From sequence record ON287370.1: a DNA stretch of 64,000 nucleotides; one strand, given 5' to 3'. The notes under the pieces are model-generated. The model ran no database searches, was not told the origin of the DNA, and was given only the letters and a program-made list of their open reading frames with translations. Made by a program: the position numbers and the translations under genes. Below, one piece after another: positions 1,941 to 42,458 of this stretch; the stretch's first letter is position 1, and each line of letters starts with the position of its first letter.

Positions 1941-3580
1941 TATTCAGCTTCCTTCTCTTCTACAGTGTTTGTCAGTTTAACCAATTCCAGGAGTTCGCGT
2001 TTCATTTCAGGTACAAGATCAAGTTGATACATTTGACCAGAAGCCATCGCGTTTACGAATTTCTCATTACCCAACAGCCCAGGCTCGATAGTGGAGTCCC
2101 AACCGGAGGTACTGAGTTCGTCCAGGAAATCAGATACAGATTTAACTAAGATGTTTTCAGTAGTGGATACAGATTGACCCACATAAATGTCACACATCTC
2201 AGTCAGCATTTCACGATCTTTAGTGGACAACTTAAAGTCATCATCCAAGAACGCTACTGGATAACTAGGATTACGAACAATCGAACACAGACATGCCAGA
2301 TGCTCAAATCCCATTTCAAACAGTTTCACTTGAGCCAGACAGATAGCTGCCATGAGCTGGTCATAGTTCAGGACCGGAATCAGGTTATAGTTAATGTCGT
2401 CGATGAATGCCAGTTGCAGTAACTTCATATGGATGGAATTCAAACGGAAATCCCAAACACGTGGAAGTGTATTGAACAGACGTTCTGCCAGGAACTGGTT
2501 CTTAACGCCCAGACCTAAACATTGATGACTGAAGAAGTCCTTTGGCTTTTTCAGATAGTTAACAACCGGGTTACCCCATTGATCTTGAGTATGTTCTTCG
2601 ATATACAAATCGAATGTGAAATACTCAGCCTGCGCAATTTCATCGGTGCCGTTTACTGCCTGAGTGATTCGGAAAGATTCTGGAATCGATTGATCATCAG
2701 AACCTGGTTTTGGATCTTTATAAGTTTTGAACTTAATATCAGACCCGCCACGAATCTCACCTTCTACCAAACTGTTCAGTTCTTTAGAAAGGTTCTTGCC
2801 ATTGATCTTGCTTGGCAGGAAAGTCAGACACAGTTTGTTAAACAAACCTTTATATACGATATAGTCAATATACTTAACATCACTGACCACACTGATACTA
2901 TTGCGTCTTGCTTCCTGACGGATGCAGGATGCCCGAACATATGTGTCGAGAATCTTCCAGCCATCCATAGCGGTTAGTGCTTCAATACGAGAGATCAAAC
3001 CACCCGCAATTGCATCTTTACCATCTTTACCTGCAATACCAGATACGTGATCCAGAAGCTGGTTAATGATCGGGAAGGACAGCTGGCCTGCAAATGCAAA
3101 CTTCACCAGTTCTTCATACTTCATGTTATCGATGGTTGTTTCTTCTGGATAATCACCCAGGGAAGACATTGCCATCAGATCTTTCGGAGCTTTACAACGC
3201 CCGGTCACCATTGCACCATAAGCTACTTCATTAGGTGCGATAGTGTTATAGATCTCACGAATGATCGGCTCCAGTTTATCTTGCAGATAACGATAGTCAC
3301 CATTATTCTTTCTGAGTTCAGACAGTTCTGCAGAATCGACTTCATCGAAATAACCTGGCTCCAGAATCTTCTTACCTTGTTTAAGAAGATCCCACAGTTT
3401 GTCGATTTTCTTCTGCTGACAACCTTCGAAGAACTCATTCAGATATTCAAACAGCTCTTGGTCAGCATCCCCACCATTTACTTTCTGAATACCACGGAAG
3501 ATAATCTCTTCACCTTTATAACTTACAATAATGGCGTCAATGTTTTTCTTGCCGCTCATTCGGATATCATAACGTAGCAT
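1940..3580 (-). CDS. Non-virion RNA polymerase promoter-specificity (sigma-like) subunit, phiKZ gp68-like
   Basis: 546 aa from ATG 3580 with GGAGGA RBS; lies between ChmC-like and PicA-like genes as in phiKZ gp67-68-69. Confidence 0.6.
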   Translation of the reverse strand: MLRYDIRMSGKKNIDAIIVSYKGEEIIFRGIQKVNGGDADQELFEYLNEFFEGCQQKKIDKLWDLLKQGKKILEPGYFDEVDSAELSELRKNNGDYRYLQDKLEPIIREIYNTIAPNEVAYGAMVTGRCKAPKDLMAMSSLGDYPEETTIDNMKYEELVKFAFAGQLSFPIINQLLDHVSGIAGKDGKDAIAGGLISRIEALTAMDGWKILDTYVRASCIRQEARRNSISVVSDVKYIDYIVYKGLFNKLCLTFLPSKINGKNLSKELNSLVEGEIRGGSDIKFKTYKDPKPGSDDQSIPESFRITQAVNGTDEIAQAEYFTFDLYIEEHTQDQWGNPVVNYLKKPKDFFSHQCLGLGVKNQFLAERLFNTLPRVWDFRLNSIHMKLLQLAFIDDINYNLIPVLNYDQLMAAICLAQVKLFEMGFEHLACLCSIVRNPSYPVAFLDDDFKLSTKDREMLTEMCDIYVGQSVSTTENILVKSVSDFLDELSTSGWDSTIEPGLLGNEKFVNAMASGQMYQLDLVPEMKRELLELVKLTNTVEEKEAE

Positions 3581-3625
3581 TGCACATCCTCCTAAACTAA
3601 ATTCATTTATGTTCATACACTCTAA

Positions 3626-3645
3626 TAATATCTGTTTCAACATTT
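3626..3645 (-). promoter_or_regulatory. Early (virion RNAP) promoter
   Basis: Minus strand AAATGTTGAAACAGATATTA; resembles phiKZ early TATATTAC-type motif; same pattern at 8 other gene starts. Confidence 0.65.
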
Positions 3646-3719
3646 ATAGACATTACAAAAATGAATTGACAGGATATGGATCGTAGAGTTATTAATTAAA
3701 ATAACAAAACAAACATAGA

Positions 3720-38399: not shown

Positions 38400-38645
38400 A
38401 TGCAAGAAACTAAGTTGCTTACTTTCTCAGAAGTTCTTGAAGGACTTAAAGAAGGGAAAAGATACCAGCGTAAAGGTTGGAACGGTAAAGGTCTATGTGT
38501 AACTATTCATAATGTTCCTGGGATTCAACCATTCTTCTTAATAATCGATGCGGCAAAACTTATATCCAATACCTGGGTTCCTTCAATCTCTGATCTGTTG
38601 GCAGAAGACTGGTTGGAATGGGGTGGTTTGTTTGCTGAGCTTTAA
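38400..38645 (+). CDS. tad2: Tad2-like (DUF2829) anti-Thoeris/anti-CBASS sponge
   Basis: TFSEVLEGLKEGKRYQRKGWNGKG ... WVPSISDLLAEDW, typical DUF2829 termini, 81 aa. Confidence 0.8.
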   Translation: MQETKLLTFSEVLEGLKEGKRYQRKGWNGKGLCVTIHNVPGIQPFFLIIDAAKLISNTWVPSISDLLAEDWLEWGGLFAEL

Positions 38646-39308: not shown

Positions 39309-39318
39309 ACAGGATTAA

Positions 39319-39444
39319 CCCCACTGCCCTTCCAAACGTAATAGACGCGAACCGGGTGTCACATTGATCAAGGTATCAGGTGAGCCGAAACGGATTGTTG
39401 AATTACAAGTAAGAATCAGTGCTGACTTAGATGTCAAAGTGGGG
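39319..39444 (+). ncRNA. Candidate multi-stem ncRNA
   Basis: CCCCACT/AGTGGGG closing helix with 4-5 internal hairpins; no ORF. Confidence 0.4.
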
Positions 39445-39506
39445 TGTCTTCCTTAAACTCTTGCTTAAAGCTTTATTACGATAAGTCTTTGAGCGAGCGT
39501 TTCGGG

Positions 39507-39653
39507 TTGGGTGCGCCAAAGGAGCCATCGTAGGCCAAGTCTGGGGGATAATGGGTGAGACCCATGTGATGCCAGAGCAGGGTTACCGCGAGGTAATCAA
39601 ACCGAGTTACAGTTGGACATTGTCTGACCTGGGAGCTAGTGACTCCCACCCAA
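39507..39653 (+). ncRNA. Candidate ncRNA with T-arm-like hairpin abutting tRNA-Asn
   Basis: TTGGG/CCCAA closure, GGGAG-CTAGTGA-CTCCC 5-bp stem with 7-nt loop, GNRA hairpins (GAGA, GCGA). Confidence 0.5.
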
Positions 39654-39729: not shown

Positions 39730-39734
39730 ATCAA

Positions 39735-39831
39735 TGCCCTATAGTGATGAGGGAATGGTGGATTATCAAATCTCCAGATTCTATTATCCATAAACCATTG
39801 TTGTGAAACGAATCATCACACAAGGGCACCA
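39735..39831 (+). ncRNA. CCA-terminated non-cloverleaf RNA between tRNAs
   Basis: GCCCT/AGGGC + A + CCA, GTGATGA/TCATCAC, AATGGT/ACCATT; no canonical D or T arm. Confidence 0.5.
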
Positions 39832-39836
39832 TATGA

Positions 39837-40023: not shown

Positions 40024-40152
40024 ATGTATTTTAGTGGTGGCTCCTGGACAGGGGCTTTTGTAATCTTTGGATTACTTTGCGCTGTAGTTGGTTGGGGCGT
40101 TATTGAAACACTACGTTGGCTTTTCTCTTTCGTCCATATTACATTTGGTTAG
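40024..40152 (+). CDS. Small membrane protein (42 aa), not in ORF track
   Basis: AAGGAG RBS; MYFSGGSWTGAFVIFGLLCAVVGWGVIETLRWLFSFVHITFG*. Confidence 0.65.
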   Translation: MYFSGGSWTGAFVIFGLLCAVVGWGVIETLRWLFSFVHITFG

Positions 40153-40435: not shown

Positions 40436-40512
40436 GGCCCTGTAGCTCAGTTGGTTAGAGCAAGTGACTCATAATCGCCTGGTCACAGGTTCAAGTCCTG
40501 TCAGGGCCACCA
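40436..40512 (+). tRNA. tRNA-Ile2(CAT) (lysidine type)
   Basis: GGCCCTG/CAGGGCC A73 CCA; GACTCATAATCGC and overall sequence close to enterobacterial tRNA-Ile2, not fMet. Confidence 0.88.
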
Positions 40513-40520
40513 TGTAGTAA

Positions 40521-40898
40521 CCCAGTTAAGTTGGGAAGTGTAAGTCTGGTCCAATGAGCCGATTGATTCGGGGTTGGAAGGGGTTTGCCAGTCAACGGTA
40601 TTGGGATGTAAGACCTCTGTAAGTTCGGCCCTACTGGGCAGACAAGTACAGAGGCAATACCTGGCTAGTATGCCAGGTTTAAATCCAAGAGTGAACGGCG
40701 GCGAGAGTCCGCTATTGTAAATAGCTCTTGGTGGGTGTTGTCCTGGTTAAGCCTCGGCGACATAGCAGCGCGTTTGATAGAATGCCCAGTAGCATAAGCT
40801 GAATGCACTTCCGATACGTGACTATTGGATTATCGATGATGGTAGAACCCGAACTCCATCCTGGGCGGTCATAAAAAACAATATCTATCTTAACTGGG
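40521..40898 (+). ncRNA. Candidate 378-nt pseudoknotted ncRNA
   Basis: CCCAGTTAAG/CTTAACTGGG perfect closing helix, GGAAGTGTA/TGCACTTCC, loop-derived CTACTGGGCA/TGCCCAGTAG 10-bp pseudoknot, several hairpins. Confidence 0.65.
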
Positions 40899-40982
40899 AA
40901 CGCTGTACCCATATGTGTCTTGGTATCGAACAAACCCTAGCTATATATGCATAAATGTGATGAGCTTGAGAGTTGATGATAC

Positions 40983-41112
40983 GGAGACACACCCATCGGT
41001 CCTTCTGAACGAAAGCATAACTTAAGGTTGAACATTGATGTTCAAATAACCTGGGAGAGTAATGAGATTACTCATGCGATATCAGAGGACCACCCTAATC
41101 CCTTTGGTGAGG
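40983..41112 (+). ncRNA. Multi-stem RNA domain 5' of the hammerhead
   Basis: GGTCC-TCTGA/TCAGA-GGACC, TTGAACA/TGTTCAA, GAGTAAT/ATTACTC, ACCCT/AGGGT. Confidence 0.55.
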
Positions 41113-41114
41113 GT

Positions 41115-41210
41115 TGTCGTACTATCTGACGAGTCTGACGACATAAAACAAGTAGACGAAACGGGTATCCAATAAGGTGTCTCCAGCACCATTGGAACCG
41201 TCATAGAACA
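41115..41210 (+). ncRNA. Type I hammerhead ribozyme, predicted cleavage GUC after 41202
   Basis: CUGACGA 41126-32; stem II GUCU/AGAC; GAAA 41158-61; stem III ACGG/CCGU extended by UCCAAU/AUUGGA and GGUG/CACC; stem I CUAU/AUAG; loop II pseudoknot UGUCGU/ACGACA. Confidence 0.9.
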
Positions 41211-41452
41211 GCTGTGCCCTAACCGTGAGCAGCCACCCGATGTTCAAGGGTGAGACAACAGCGCTTTAACTGGAAGGTAACTATATGGCATTATAGCGTA
41301 CCAAGCCAGACGCAAACGGTCCGTCTCCATGCCAGGGGAAAGTTGTTGACATCAACCGTAGACAGCCGTCTGAGTGATTGTAATATGAAGGGATTTGCAA
41401 CCCTGAGATTATTGATTGCTCTTTCGAGTGTCCATGTAACTAAGCATTTACT

Positions 41453-41482
41453 CCCTACCCCTTCCGAAAGGTTGGGGTAGGG
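41453..41482 (+). terminator. Terminator closing the ncRNA locus
   Basis: CCCTACCCC/GGGGTAGGG stem followed by U-rich tract. Confidence 0.8.
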
Positions 41483-41612
41483 GTTTATGTTTGTCTTTTA
41501 GTTTTAAATCATATGACGTCTTCTCTCTATTAACAAACCTAGGATGGTTGGATAGTGAGATCATTGCCTTTCTATAAAGGTCTATTTCGAAATAGTATTT
41601 AGGAGGGTTCAA

Positions 41613-42458
41613 GTGAATCCAGTTGATTTTAGTGTTGAGTATGTGATCAATGGTCCTACCGACATCTCTGAATATTTATTGAAGCTAGCCTTCCATAATC
41701 CAAATAACGGTTATGGAAGTATCTGGGCTCCAGTGAATGACGAGTTTACTGTAGAACAAGGTATTCGTGAAAAGGTCATCATGAAAATGGTTGGTCCTTT
41801 ACTTAATGTGGCTGGCGGTACTACGGAGATCATCGATCTTAGCGCAGCACATATTGAAAACCTTTCCGGTGGTATCATCGCAGTTAACGTTCCTGACTTC
41901 ATGACAGGTGGTCGTCGTATTCTTTCTGTCTTGGAAGTTTACCCAGGTAACATCAACCGAGCTATCAACAATGGTTATAACTTTAATAACTATGCAGCTT
42001 GTGGTTCTGGTATGATGAACAATAGTCTTAACCGCTTAATTAACGGTTTGGACGATGGTCAGGTTCAACGTTCCTTTACTAGCTTCACCATGACAGGTAA
42101 TAACTCCTTTATTATCCGTGACGCTGGTTCTGCGATGTTTAATATGATCGCTAAAGTTATTCTGTCTTATGACGAACACTTCAGCGTTATACCTGCAAGA
42201 ATGTATGACAAGTTTGCCGAGCTAGTAGAACTTGGTGTTAAAGCTTATATCTATAAGACATGTCGTCGTGGTATGCAAGAAGCCGTTTCACGTTTCGGTG
42301 TAACTGTTGAAGATGTTCAGGATGATATCCAAGGTTATGCTGATGCTCACCGTGAGTTCAAAGATCTGTATAATAATGAGATTAAGAAATATCTTGCTTA
42401 TGCTGATCCGAAAGGTAAGTCTGATGCAATTAAGATGACAGTCCCAAGGAAACGTTAA
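41613..42458 (+). CDS. Conserved phiKZ-like virion structural protein
   Basis: 281 aa, GTG start with AGGAGG; position upstream of terminase. Confidence 0.6.
   Translation: MNPVDFSVEYVINGPTDISEYLLKLAFHNPNNGYGSIWAPVNDEFTVEQGIREKVIMKMVGPLLNVAGGTTEIIDLSAAHIENLSGGIIAVNVPDFMTGGRRILSVLEVYPGNINRAINNGYNFNNYAACGSGMMNNSLNRLINGLDDGQVQRSFTSFTMTGNNSFIIRDAGSAMFNMIAKVILSYDEHFSVIPARMYDKFAELVELGVKAYIYKTCRRGMQEAVSRFGVTVEDVQDDIQGYADAHREFKDLYNNEIKKYLAYADPKGKSDAIKMTVPRKR

Follow-up and report, generated by a model that had tools for sequence, protein, structure and literature searches.

A conserved multi-domain non-coding RNA of OBP-like jumbo phages with a predicted type I hammerhead at its 3′ end

Introduction

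Between a tRNA gene and the next coding sequence (CDS, beginning at 41613) of the Serratia jumbo phage vB_SmaM-Sureiya (ON287370, 256 kb, genus Petsuvirus) lies a gap of 1,100 nt (40513-41612) that contains no annotated gene, and the question raised by this locus is what the gap encodes. The window analysed here is a stretch of 64,000 nt, whose coordinates are those of the record. In a reading made from the letters of the window alone (the sequence-only reading), the front part of the gap (40521-40898) had been assigned to a pseudoknotted RNA of 378 nt, possibly of a new class. Large intricate RNAs without a known function are rare, and RNase P, group II introns, OLE, GOLLD and ROOL have each proved biochemically unusual. 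From a comparison of homologous loci, the gap is read here as encoding a processed, stable and ornate non-coding RNA of ~690 nt, which is built from several domains, and whose 5′ end would be made by tRNA processing and its 3′ end by self-cleavage. The probability of this reading is put at about 0.7.

Conservation and coding status of the gap

Using blastn, the whole gap was found conserved in phage Yubaba (99.9% identity) and in Klebsiella phage N1M2 (90%), and parts of it in Kosakonia phage Kc263, Edwardsiella phage pEt-SU, Pantoea phage Survivor, Shewanella phage SXP01 and Pseudomonas phage OBP. With pattern scans and nhmmer, the set grew by Erwinia phage AH04, four jumbo-phage contigs from IMG/VR and one metagenome contig, so that the homologues which the sequence-only reading had proposed to seek in jumbo phages with blastn and nhmmer were indeed found. 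The resulting comparison set, to which the alignment results below refer, consisted of 13 distinct sequences of OBP-like jumbo phages in two clades, Sureiya and five metagenomic contigs included. The genome scan gave zero additional homologues and the metagenome scan one; a second pattern, built on domain A (Table 1), returned only known loci and one chance match in a coding region (L044), and blastn against E. coli genomes and plasmids gave no match. In the syntenic gaps of the Aeromonas phages, EL and Miami, located via the DUF7484 protein, no similarity to domains A, B or the hammerhead was detected by nhmmer or blastn.

In Sureiya and in all the relatives detected with blastn, the gap follows tRNAs and a glutaredoxin gene and is itself followed by genes for DUF7484, phrog_2921 and thymidylate kinase; its position between glutaredoxin/tRNA and the DUF7484 gene is kept in seven annotated phages. 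Conservation spans ~40521 to the terminator at 41453-41499, i.e. ~600 nt past 40898, and two covarying helices of domain A, Pa and Pc, span that boundary. The view of the 378-nt segment as a self-contained unit was therefore abandoned.

The segment had been described as free of open reading frames (ORFs), in agreement with a longest ORF of 76 aa in 40513-41612. Because no ORF is shared among the homologues across the gap, and because, of the 12 indels that separate Sureiya from N1M2 in it, 11 have lengths not divisible by 3, the region is, as judged from its sequence, non-coding. Two hypothetical CDSs overlap the RNA, N1M2_252 (positions 3056-3568 of locus L002, minus strand) and QYN80068 of Kc263 (3513-3704 of locus L003); neither is conserved in relatives, and both are probably mis-annotations.

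Type I hammerhead motif at the predicted end of the large RNA

The informative parts of the gap, a hammerhead motif at 41115-41206 with a second module and a terminator beyond it, had been overlooked in the sequence-only reading. The core was complete in 13 of 13 sequences, with CUGA(C/U/A)GA, GAA, the A...U pair and GUC identical, and cleavage is predicted between C41202 and A41203. Three helices surround the core: stems II and III are closed and stem I is open-ended, which assigns the hammerhead to type I. Double changes were observed in all four pairs of stem I. No variation was seen in the 3 bp of stem II or in the 4 bp at the base of stem III, whereas the extension of stem III covaries. 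Loop II pairs with the 5′ extension of stem I in a 5-bp pseudoknot, which was 98.5% paired, with double changes in three of its five pairs. Overall, the motif was 84.9% paired with 15 pairs showing double changes. Controls with slid partners collapsed; among 500 shuffles, one reached the count of pairs with double changes and none the paired percentage, the number of double-change cells or the covariation score. According to a hammerhead survey (PMC3088659), pseudoknots between stems I and II enhance activity and occur in about 40% of natural hammerheads, and in type I both the catalytic bulk and the cyclic phosphate stay on the 5′ product.

A model built from the 13 sequences (R1) gave a single match in the window (109 bits). 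Outside the window, it matched hammerheads of this subtype in Klebsiella phage Miami and in numerous unrelated viral contigs, which marks the hammerhead as a generic phage module joined here to one specific large RNA. The match in Miami (NC_070950; 774-862 of locus L043, minus strand of the locus, 36.7 bits with R1) is an unannotated type I hammerhead with the same pseudoknot; the gap that holds it measures 348 nt and is 2 kb away from the DUF7484 gene, which is on the other strand. A candidate for a second hammerhead around CUGAACGAAAG was rejected, as the stretch lacks stem II, and in Aeromonas phage D6 no hammerhead was found by covariance model search.

The size and complexity of the 378-nt segment had been likened to those of a catalytic or scaffold RNA. 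With regard to catalysis, this holds for the hammerhead only, as a motif recognized by sequence and covariation.

Domain D and terminator

Downstream of the predicted cleavage site, a further structured module of ~250 nt, domain D, precedes the terminator in nine phages; the contig L033 stops soon after the domain has begun. Three phages (pEt-SU, Survivor and SXP01) have no domain D and pass from cleavage site to terminator in 63-66 nt. Two Aeromonas phages, AhC3_1 and D6, also have the 3′ sub-motif of domain D; the domain D motif retained in Aeromonas jumbo phages reads CAAAC(A/G)GUCCGC-hairpin-GAAGUUGU and comes with a similar terminator and the same gene beyond. In AhC3_1 (2680-2960 of L040) and D6 (2004-2380 of L041), the domain-D-like RNA stands 5′ of the DUF7484 gene and comprises a hairpin that carries UAACUGUG in its loop, the element CAAACAGUCCGC-hairpin-GAAGUUGU and the terminator. 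Domain D is taken as a wider, independent family because it is present in phages without the large RNA and the hammerhead. Since three phages lack domain D and the Aeromonas phages have only domain D, the RNAs on either side of the hammerhead are separable, and, on this comparison of sequences, the hammerhead stands exactly at the junction of the two units.

The terminator, a 12-bp covarying stem followed by a U-tract, is present in all homologues; it is missed by a simple terminator scanner because of two U-U mismatches. The region 41338-41498 resembles L10_leader (RF00557) with 26.3 bits (E = 0.05, below the gathering threshold of 44). This resemblance rests on the 11-nt motif GUAGACAG and the terminator and is probably due to chance.

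Architecture of domains A and B

The part upstream of the hammerhead was resolved into domain A, a poorly aligning linker of variable length and domain B (Table 1). In all four alignment blocks, 89-95% of the cells were paired; none of 500 shuffles reached the paired percentage or the number of double-change cells, and 0-2 reached the number of double-change pairs. For the two RNAalifold blocks of domain A (A3 and A4), 90-93% of the cells were paired, with 17 and 14 pairs showing double changes; paired percentage and double-change cells were reached in 0 of 500 shuffles, and the number of double-change pairs in 2 of 500 (A3) and 0 of 500 (A4). Upon sliding the partners, pairing fell to 25-55%. 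The strand was read from the excess of G-U over A-C cells (190 vs 26): pairing was 92% on the plus strand and 82% when read on the minus strand, and the RNA is therefore that of the plus strand.

Within domain A, the helix Px at the base of arm 1 occurs as GUUGG/UCAAC, GUCGG/UCGAC, GUCAG/UUGAC and GUCGA/UUGAC, and the inner hairpin of this arm was recovered in 13 of 13 sequences. Two local hairpins favoured initially, 40521-25/40531-35 and 40588-92/40600-04, were given up, as Px covaries better. In the arm at 40685-40731, the pair types counted were AU:8 GC:5, GC:9 AU:3 and AU:7 GC:3, and its inner hairpin was 94% paired with three double changes. In the long arm, Pa and Pc were 100% and 97% paired with double changes in each, and clade-specific compensations were followed sequence by sequence in Pd and Pe, the latter appearing as UGUCCAG/CUGGGCG, UGUCCUG/CAGGGCG, GGUCCCU/AGGGACC and GUUCCC/GGGAAC. 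A pseudoknot of loop CCC 40848-50 with GGG 40863-65 was considered and dropped because this GGG pairs in Pe.

Pe closes a four-way junction with hairpins at 40792-95/40803-06, 40811-16/40823-28 and 40838-42/40856-60. The loop of the first, AAGCUNA, contains a self-complementary AGCU; among the 11 homologues in which the arm is kept, 10 have this loop unchanged, while its stem covaries; in OBP the loop is replaced. A homodimeric kissing loop via AGCU was dropped in view of OBP, which is without that loop. In two metagenomic members, L025 and L018, the long arm is lost as one unit. The junction (40783-40867) has proportions like those of a cloverleaf: its 7-bp stem is followed by 2 nt of linker, a 4-bp stem (7-nt loop), a 6-bp hairpin, 9 nt of linker and a 5-bp hairpin, after which there is no final linker. 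Tested as a tRNA (116 nt), it gave no hit to the tRNA model at E <= 10 and no ARAGORN call, the likeness being one of stem and linker lengths only.

Domain B is a three-way junction with invariant joining strands (ACGAAAG and GYGAUA). Invariant joining strands of the large RNA include UGUAAGACC, UAAAUCCA, GAACCCGAA and ACGAAAG.

Table 1 Features of the tRNA-RNA locus of phage Sureiya (window coordinates; helices are given as 5′ strand/3′ strand)
Feature	Position	Strand	Remarks
tRNA, CAU anticodon, Ile2-like	40436-40512	+	ARAGORN, Rfam tRNA 67 bits; directly 5′ of the RNA
Domain A, row of covarying arms	40521-40910	+	378-nt segment plus 12 nt; RNAalifold blocks A3, A4
Arm 1	40530-40596	+	Px 40530-34/40592-96 around 40543-47/40581-85, 40550-54/40574-78 and 40559-62/40568-71
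Hairpin CCUCUGUA/UACAGAGG with inner GCCC/GGGC stem	40614-40654	+	Double changes in 6 of 8 pairs; inner stem in each homologue
Hairpin ACCUGGC/GCCAGGU	40659-40678	+	Covarying pairs, alignment columns 167-171/188-192
Arm CCAAGAG/CUCUUGG	40685-40731	+	Encloses hairpins 40698-701/40709-12 and 40713-15/40721-23
Long arm	40733-40910	+	Pa 40733-36/40907-10; Pb hairpin 40737-42/40756-61; Pc 40765-70/40901-06; Pd 40775-81/40884-90; Pe 40783-89/40861-67
Variable linker, clade-specific inserts	40911-41001	+	Aligns poorly, length varies
Domain B, three-way junction	41002-41088	+	Closed by B1 41002-08/41082-88; B1 97% paired, 5 of 7 pairs with double changes
Type I hammerhead (predicted)	41115-41206	+	Pseudoknot 41115-19/41139-43; stem I 41122-25/41203-06; core CUGACGA 41126-32; stem II 41133-35/41155-57; GAA 41158-60; stem III 41161-64/41198-201 with long extension
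Domain D, predicted 3′ cleavage product	41203-41452	+	57 predicted pairs, 28 with double changes
Intrinsic terminator	41453-41499	+	Stem 41453-61/41474-82, then U-rich tail

Long-range pairings proposed for the 378-nt segment

The sequence-only reading had joined the ends of the 378-nt segment by a 10-bp helix and had added two long-range helices and a kissing pseudoknot of 10 bp. All of the complementarities quoted are present in Sureiya: 40521-30/40889-98 and 40631-40/40783-92 are perfect over 10 bp, 40534-42/40804-12 forms 9 bp (one G-U among them), and 40550-55/40824-29 (UCCAAU/AUUGGA) forms 6 bp. By chance, a stretch of 378 nt would rarely hold two perfect inverted repeats of 10 bp (dinucleotide shuffles had 0.06 on average, and 1.4% of them reached two), and the segment folds with a minimum free energy of -139.6 kcal/mol (z = -4.87 vs dinucleotide shuffles). 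The homologues divided these pairings. The local hairpins 40614-21/40647-54, 40659-65/40672-78, 40685-91/40725-31 and 40838-42/40856-60 covary, their pairing being kept through double changes in 12 homologues, whereas neither the terminal helix nor the three long-range and pseudoknot pairings are conserved.

The terminal helix is degraded to 5-7 bp already in N1M2 (90% identical) and to 0-5 bp elsewhere, with 66% paired overall; a core CCCAR/YUGGG of 3-5 bp recurs in some members of clade 1 (N1M2, SXP01, L033 and Kc263) and is significant in none singly. The pairing UCCAAU/AUUGGA reaches 53%, and its strands are taken by the covarying hairpins 40550-54/40574-78 and 40811-16/40823-28, each recovered in every homologue with differing sequences. 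The kissing duplex beats shuffles in Sureiya (-19.0 vs -11.1 +/- 2.9 kcal/mol) and only there; of 10 further homologues tested, 9 do not have it, with 3-5 of 10 pairs in all but Sureiya and N1M2, and in N1M2 it is not significant. Its 3′ strand finds its partner in Pe (with 40861-67) and its 5′ strand in a local inner stem. For 40534-42/40804-12 the outcome was mixed: eight of nine positions are kept in four other clade-1 sequences, but the 3′ strand overlaps two covarying hairpins, so that this is at most a short tertiary or alternative contact. As each of the contested strands has another covarying partner (Px, Pe or the hairpins 40550-78 and 40811-28) and conservation runs past 40898, a free-standing 378-nt RNA with terminal helix and two pseudoknots is very improbable, the exact complementarities of Sureiya notwithstanding.

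Searches for known families

Rfam 15 was scanned at the gathering threshold and at E <= 10 with the 64 kb window, with pieces of 3 kb, 1 kb, 131 nt and 116 nt, and with six relatives. For the window and the six relatives, this returned nothing but tRNAs, noise and two weak echoes, one of the hammerhead (14 bits) and one of the L10 leader (26 bits). RNase P, tmRNA and group I had been judged absent, and this proved correct: none of these models matched, nor did those of group II introns, and ARAGORN called no tmRNA. The models of GOLLD and ROOL gave no hit in the window and the six relatives at either threshold. With no fitting Rfam 15 family, the novelty proposed for the segment stands. No description of the RNA was met in the literature searched; term searches of the N1M2 genome paper and of the hammerhead survey PMC3088659 found no mention of a ribozyme or of non-coding or intergenic RNA in the former and no description of this RNA in the latter. 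By sequence, the RNA looks like a new family of large ornate phage RNA, which extends the earlier suggestion of a new class from the segment to the whole locus.

Proposed maturation and alternative explanations

In the reading preferred here, the RNA would be transcribed from the plus strand jointly with the glutaredoxin gene and tRNA-Ile2, since no terminator stands between them; a terminator-like hairpin followed by TTTTGTAA at 40039-63 lends weak support to such co-transcription. In Sureiya, and likewise in N1M2 and L033, where the same tRNA directly precedes the RNA, the 5′ end would be left by 3′ processing of the tRNA 8 nt upstream. The 3′ end would be self-made, the terminal type I hammerhead cutting after C41202, and the mature RNA of ~690 nt (roughly 40513/40521 to 41202) would carry a 2′,3′-cyclic phosphate. 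Cleavage would free domain D together with the terminator, or, in the three phages without domain D, the terminator alone. With the loss of the terminator hairpin and U-tail, the RNA would obtain a precise, non-adenylatable end, as expected of a stable trans-acting RNA. By analogy in size, invariant junction strands and tRNA neighbourhood, it is likely a scaffold or RNA machine beside GOLLD and ROOL; a role as anti-defence decoy is conceivable. Circularisation via the hammerhead was considered and dropped: pairing between spacer and stem I is not conserved, and no source of a 5′-OH end is evident. In Sureiya, the spacer GUAGUA (40514-40519) is complementary to UACUAU (41120-41125), the 5′ strand of stem I, and in SXP01 CUGUUG/UAACAG are similarly complementary; neither position nor pairing is conserved across the family.

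Several points weigh against this reading. Transcription jointly with glutaredoxin and the tRNA, cutting in the cell, a stable product and a role in trans during infection, as scaffold or decoy, are steps that we infer, and a 5′ end set by tRNA processing is undefined for phages in which no tRNA precedes the RNA. No Rfam hammerhead model reaches its gathering threshold (RF00008, 14 vs 48.5 bits, with the wrong topology and over the core only; RF00163, no hit), likely because of the long stem III and the pseudoknot. The neighbouring genes give no functional clue, those downstream encoding DUF7484 and phrog_2921 proteins. Only 13 sequences in two clades were available, for which reason many of the double changes are single evolutionary events, and, in part, the structures come from the very alignments on which the pairs were counted.

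Among the alternatives, a cis-acting leader or attenuator would shift the weight to domain D and the terminator, which would control read-through into the virion-protein and terminase genes, with the hammerhead destabilising or uncoupling the upstream RNA. It could account for domain D and terminator always standing directly 5′ of the DUF7484 gene, also in the Aeromonas phages without A, B and hammerhead, and for the sub-threshold likeness to a ribosomal-protein leader with terminator (L10_leader, see above). We nevertheless regard it as rather unlikely: three phages without domain D still have domains A and B, hammerhead and terminator; an antiterminator that could replace the terminator stem was not seen; and 700 nt of covarying arms go far beyond the needs of known attenuators. 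Moreover, a TTTTGTAA-type motif between terminator and gene in most relatives suggests a promoter of its own for the gene, with the limitation that the enrichment of this promoter-like motif (TTWTGTAA) is weak and not significant (15 matches vs 8.7 +/- 3.1 expected). If the role lay instead wholly in domains A and B, as a large ribozyme or an RNA-only multimer of the ROOL/GOLLD cage or scaffold kind, the hammerhead would only tailor the end. Size, number of arms, invariant joining strands and the phage/tRNA context match GOLLD and ROOL, and the AAGCUNA loop with its self-complementary AGCU would suit a multimer; the lack of homology to known large ribozymes or to GOLLD and ROOL, the replacement of the AGCU loop in OBP and the absence of the whole Pc-Pe arm from L025 and L018 make this, too, unlikely. 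Scarcely any credence is given to a degenerate or novel intron, a mobile RNA element or a signal at the DNA level (origin, packaging site). Jumbo phages do carry many introns, and the terminase gene is 3 kb away. However, a search of 1 kb at E <= 10 gave no hits to group I or II models, the region contains neither an endonuclease nor a reverse-transcriptase ORF, and flanking exons are absent, as it has a tRNA on one side and a terminator on the other. E. coli genomes and plasmids gave no match, and the asymmetry of G-U over A-C together with the strand-specific hammerhead argues for selection on the RNA and not on the DNA.

The preferred reading, a processed and stable RNA, can be taken further to a new class of ~0.7-kb ornate RNA of OBP-like nucleus-type jumbo phages, in which A and B constitute a new large ribozyme or an RNA-only or ribonucleoprotein assembly that matures itself via the hammerhead. 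This extension is possible and is put forward tentatively; if true, this RNA would be the first among the large phage RNAs to carry its own ribozyme for end processing. The processed RNA would in itself give phage hammerheads a concrete role, 3′-end formation of a large non-coding RNA, and the spurious CDS annotations in N1M2 and Kc263 would be corrected. The RNA is found in cultivable lytic phages with tractable hosts (Serratia, Klebsiella aerogenes, Pseudomonas fluorescens and Erwinia), its modular anatomy is clear, with a predicted self-cleavage site that would set the 3′ end, and the natural deletions (three phages without domain D, two contigs without the Pc-Pe arm) are ready-made genetic dissections.

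Neighbouring features

The tRNA adjoining the RNA is labelled tRNA-Met by GenBank and ARAGORN. The E. coli genes nearest to it (88% identity) carry the annotation tRNA-Ile, which makes the name tRNA-Ile2 used in the sequence-only reading reasonable; by sequence it is probably an Ile2 (lysidine) tRNA, and with its end at 40512 the distance of 8 nt to the segment was correct as well. Further upstream, a 42-aa hypothetical ORF is annotated at 40024-40152, which holds the terminator-like hairpin (40039-40056) and the TTTTGTAA motif (40056-63). In relatives, this motif is also found 5′ of the DUF7484 gene. A transcription unit of glutaredoxin, tRNA and RNA may begin at this site, and the annotated ORF may be spurious. 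Stretches poor in ORFs were noted inside the tRNA cluster at 39309-39653 (before tRNA-Asn) and 39730-39836 (tRNA-Asn to tRNA-Ser). At 38400-38645 (plus strand), there is an ORF of 81 aa with a match to PF11195, the Tad2-like (anti-Thoeris) domain (E = 7.6e-17), and in pEt-SU a DUF2829 gene is likewise annotated 5′ of the tRNA/glutaredoxin cluster. The homologues of the DUF7484 and phrog_2921 proteins in N1M2, pEt-SU and OBP carry the GenBank label 'putative virion structural protein'.

Comparison with known systems

Stable RNAs beside phage tRNAs have a precedent in phage T4, in which species 1 and 2 (bands C and D) are stable non-tRNA RNAs that are co-transcribed and co-processed with the phage tRNAs. 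These are about 120-140 nt long and are not known to contain a ribozyme or to resemble the RNA described here.

With the type I hammerheads with pseudoknot (Rfam clan CL00010; Perreault et al. 2011, PMC3088659), the motif shares the full core, the three helices, GUC, the open stem I and the 5-bp pseudoknot. It differs from them in a covarying extension of stem III (32-38 nt) with a conserved CUCCA loop, in being the terminal domain of a structured RNA of ~600 nt, not free-standing, and in scoring below the Rfam thresholds. Theta ribozymes, which resemble the hepatitis delta virus (HDV) ribozyme, adjoin phage tRNAs and trim neighbouring small RNAs (PMC10879173), are another case in which the tRNA region of a phage holds a small self-cleaving ribozyme that sets the end of an adjacent non-coding RNA. 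Theta ribozymes are of another class and cut at their own 5′ end, releasing the tRNA 3′ end, whereas the hammerhead at this locus would cut at its own 3′ end and stay on the large RNA.

The analogy with GOLLD (RF01998) and ROOL (RF03087), already drawn for the segment, is fair with regard to size, phage and tRNA neighbourhood: these RNAs are likewise 600-800 nt long, rich in covarying arms, encoded by phages or prophages and usually adjoin tRNA genes. Unlike them, with which it has no match in sequence or structure, the RNA presented here belongs to jumbo phages of Gammaproteobacteria and is followed by a second module; the predicted new feature with respect to known large phage RNAs is a self-cleaving ribozyme of its own, an integral hammerhead that would form its 3′ end.

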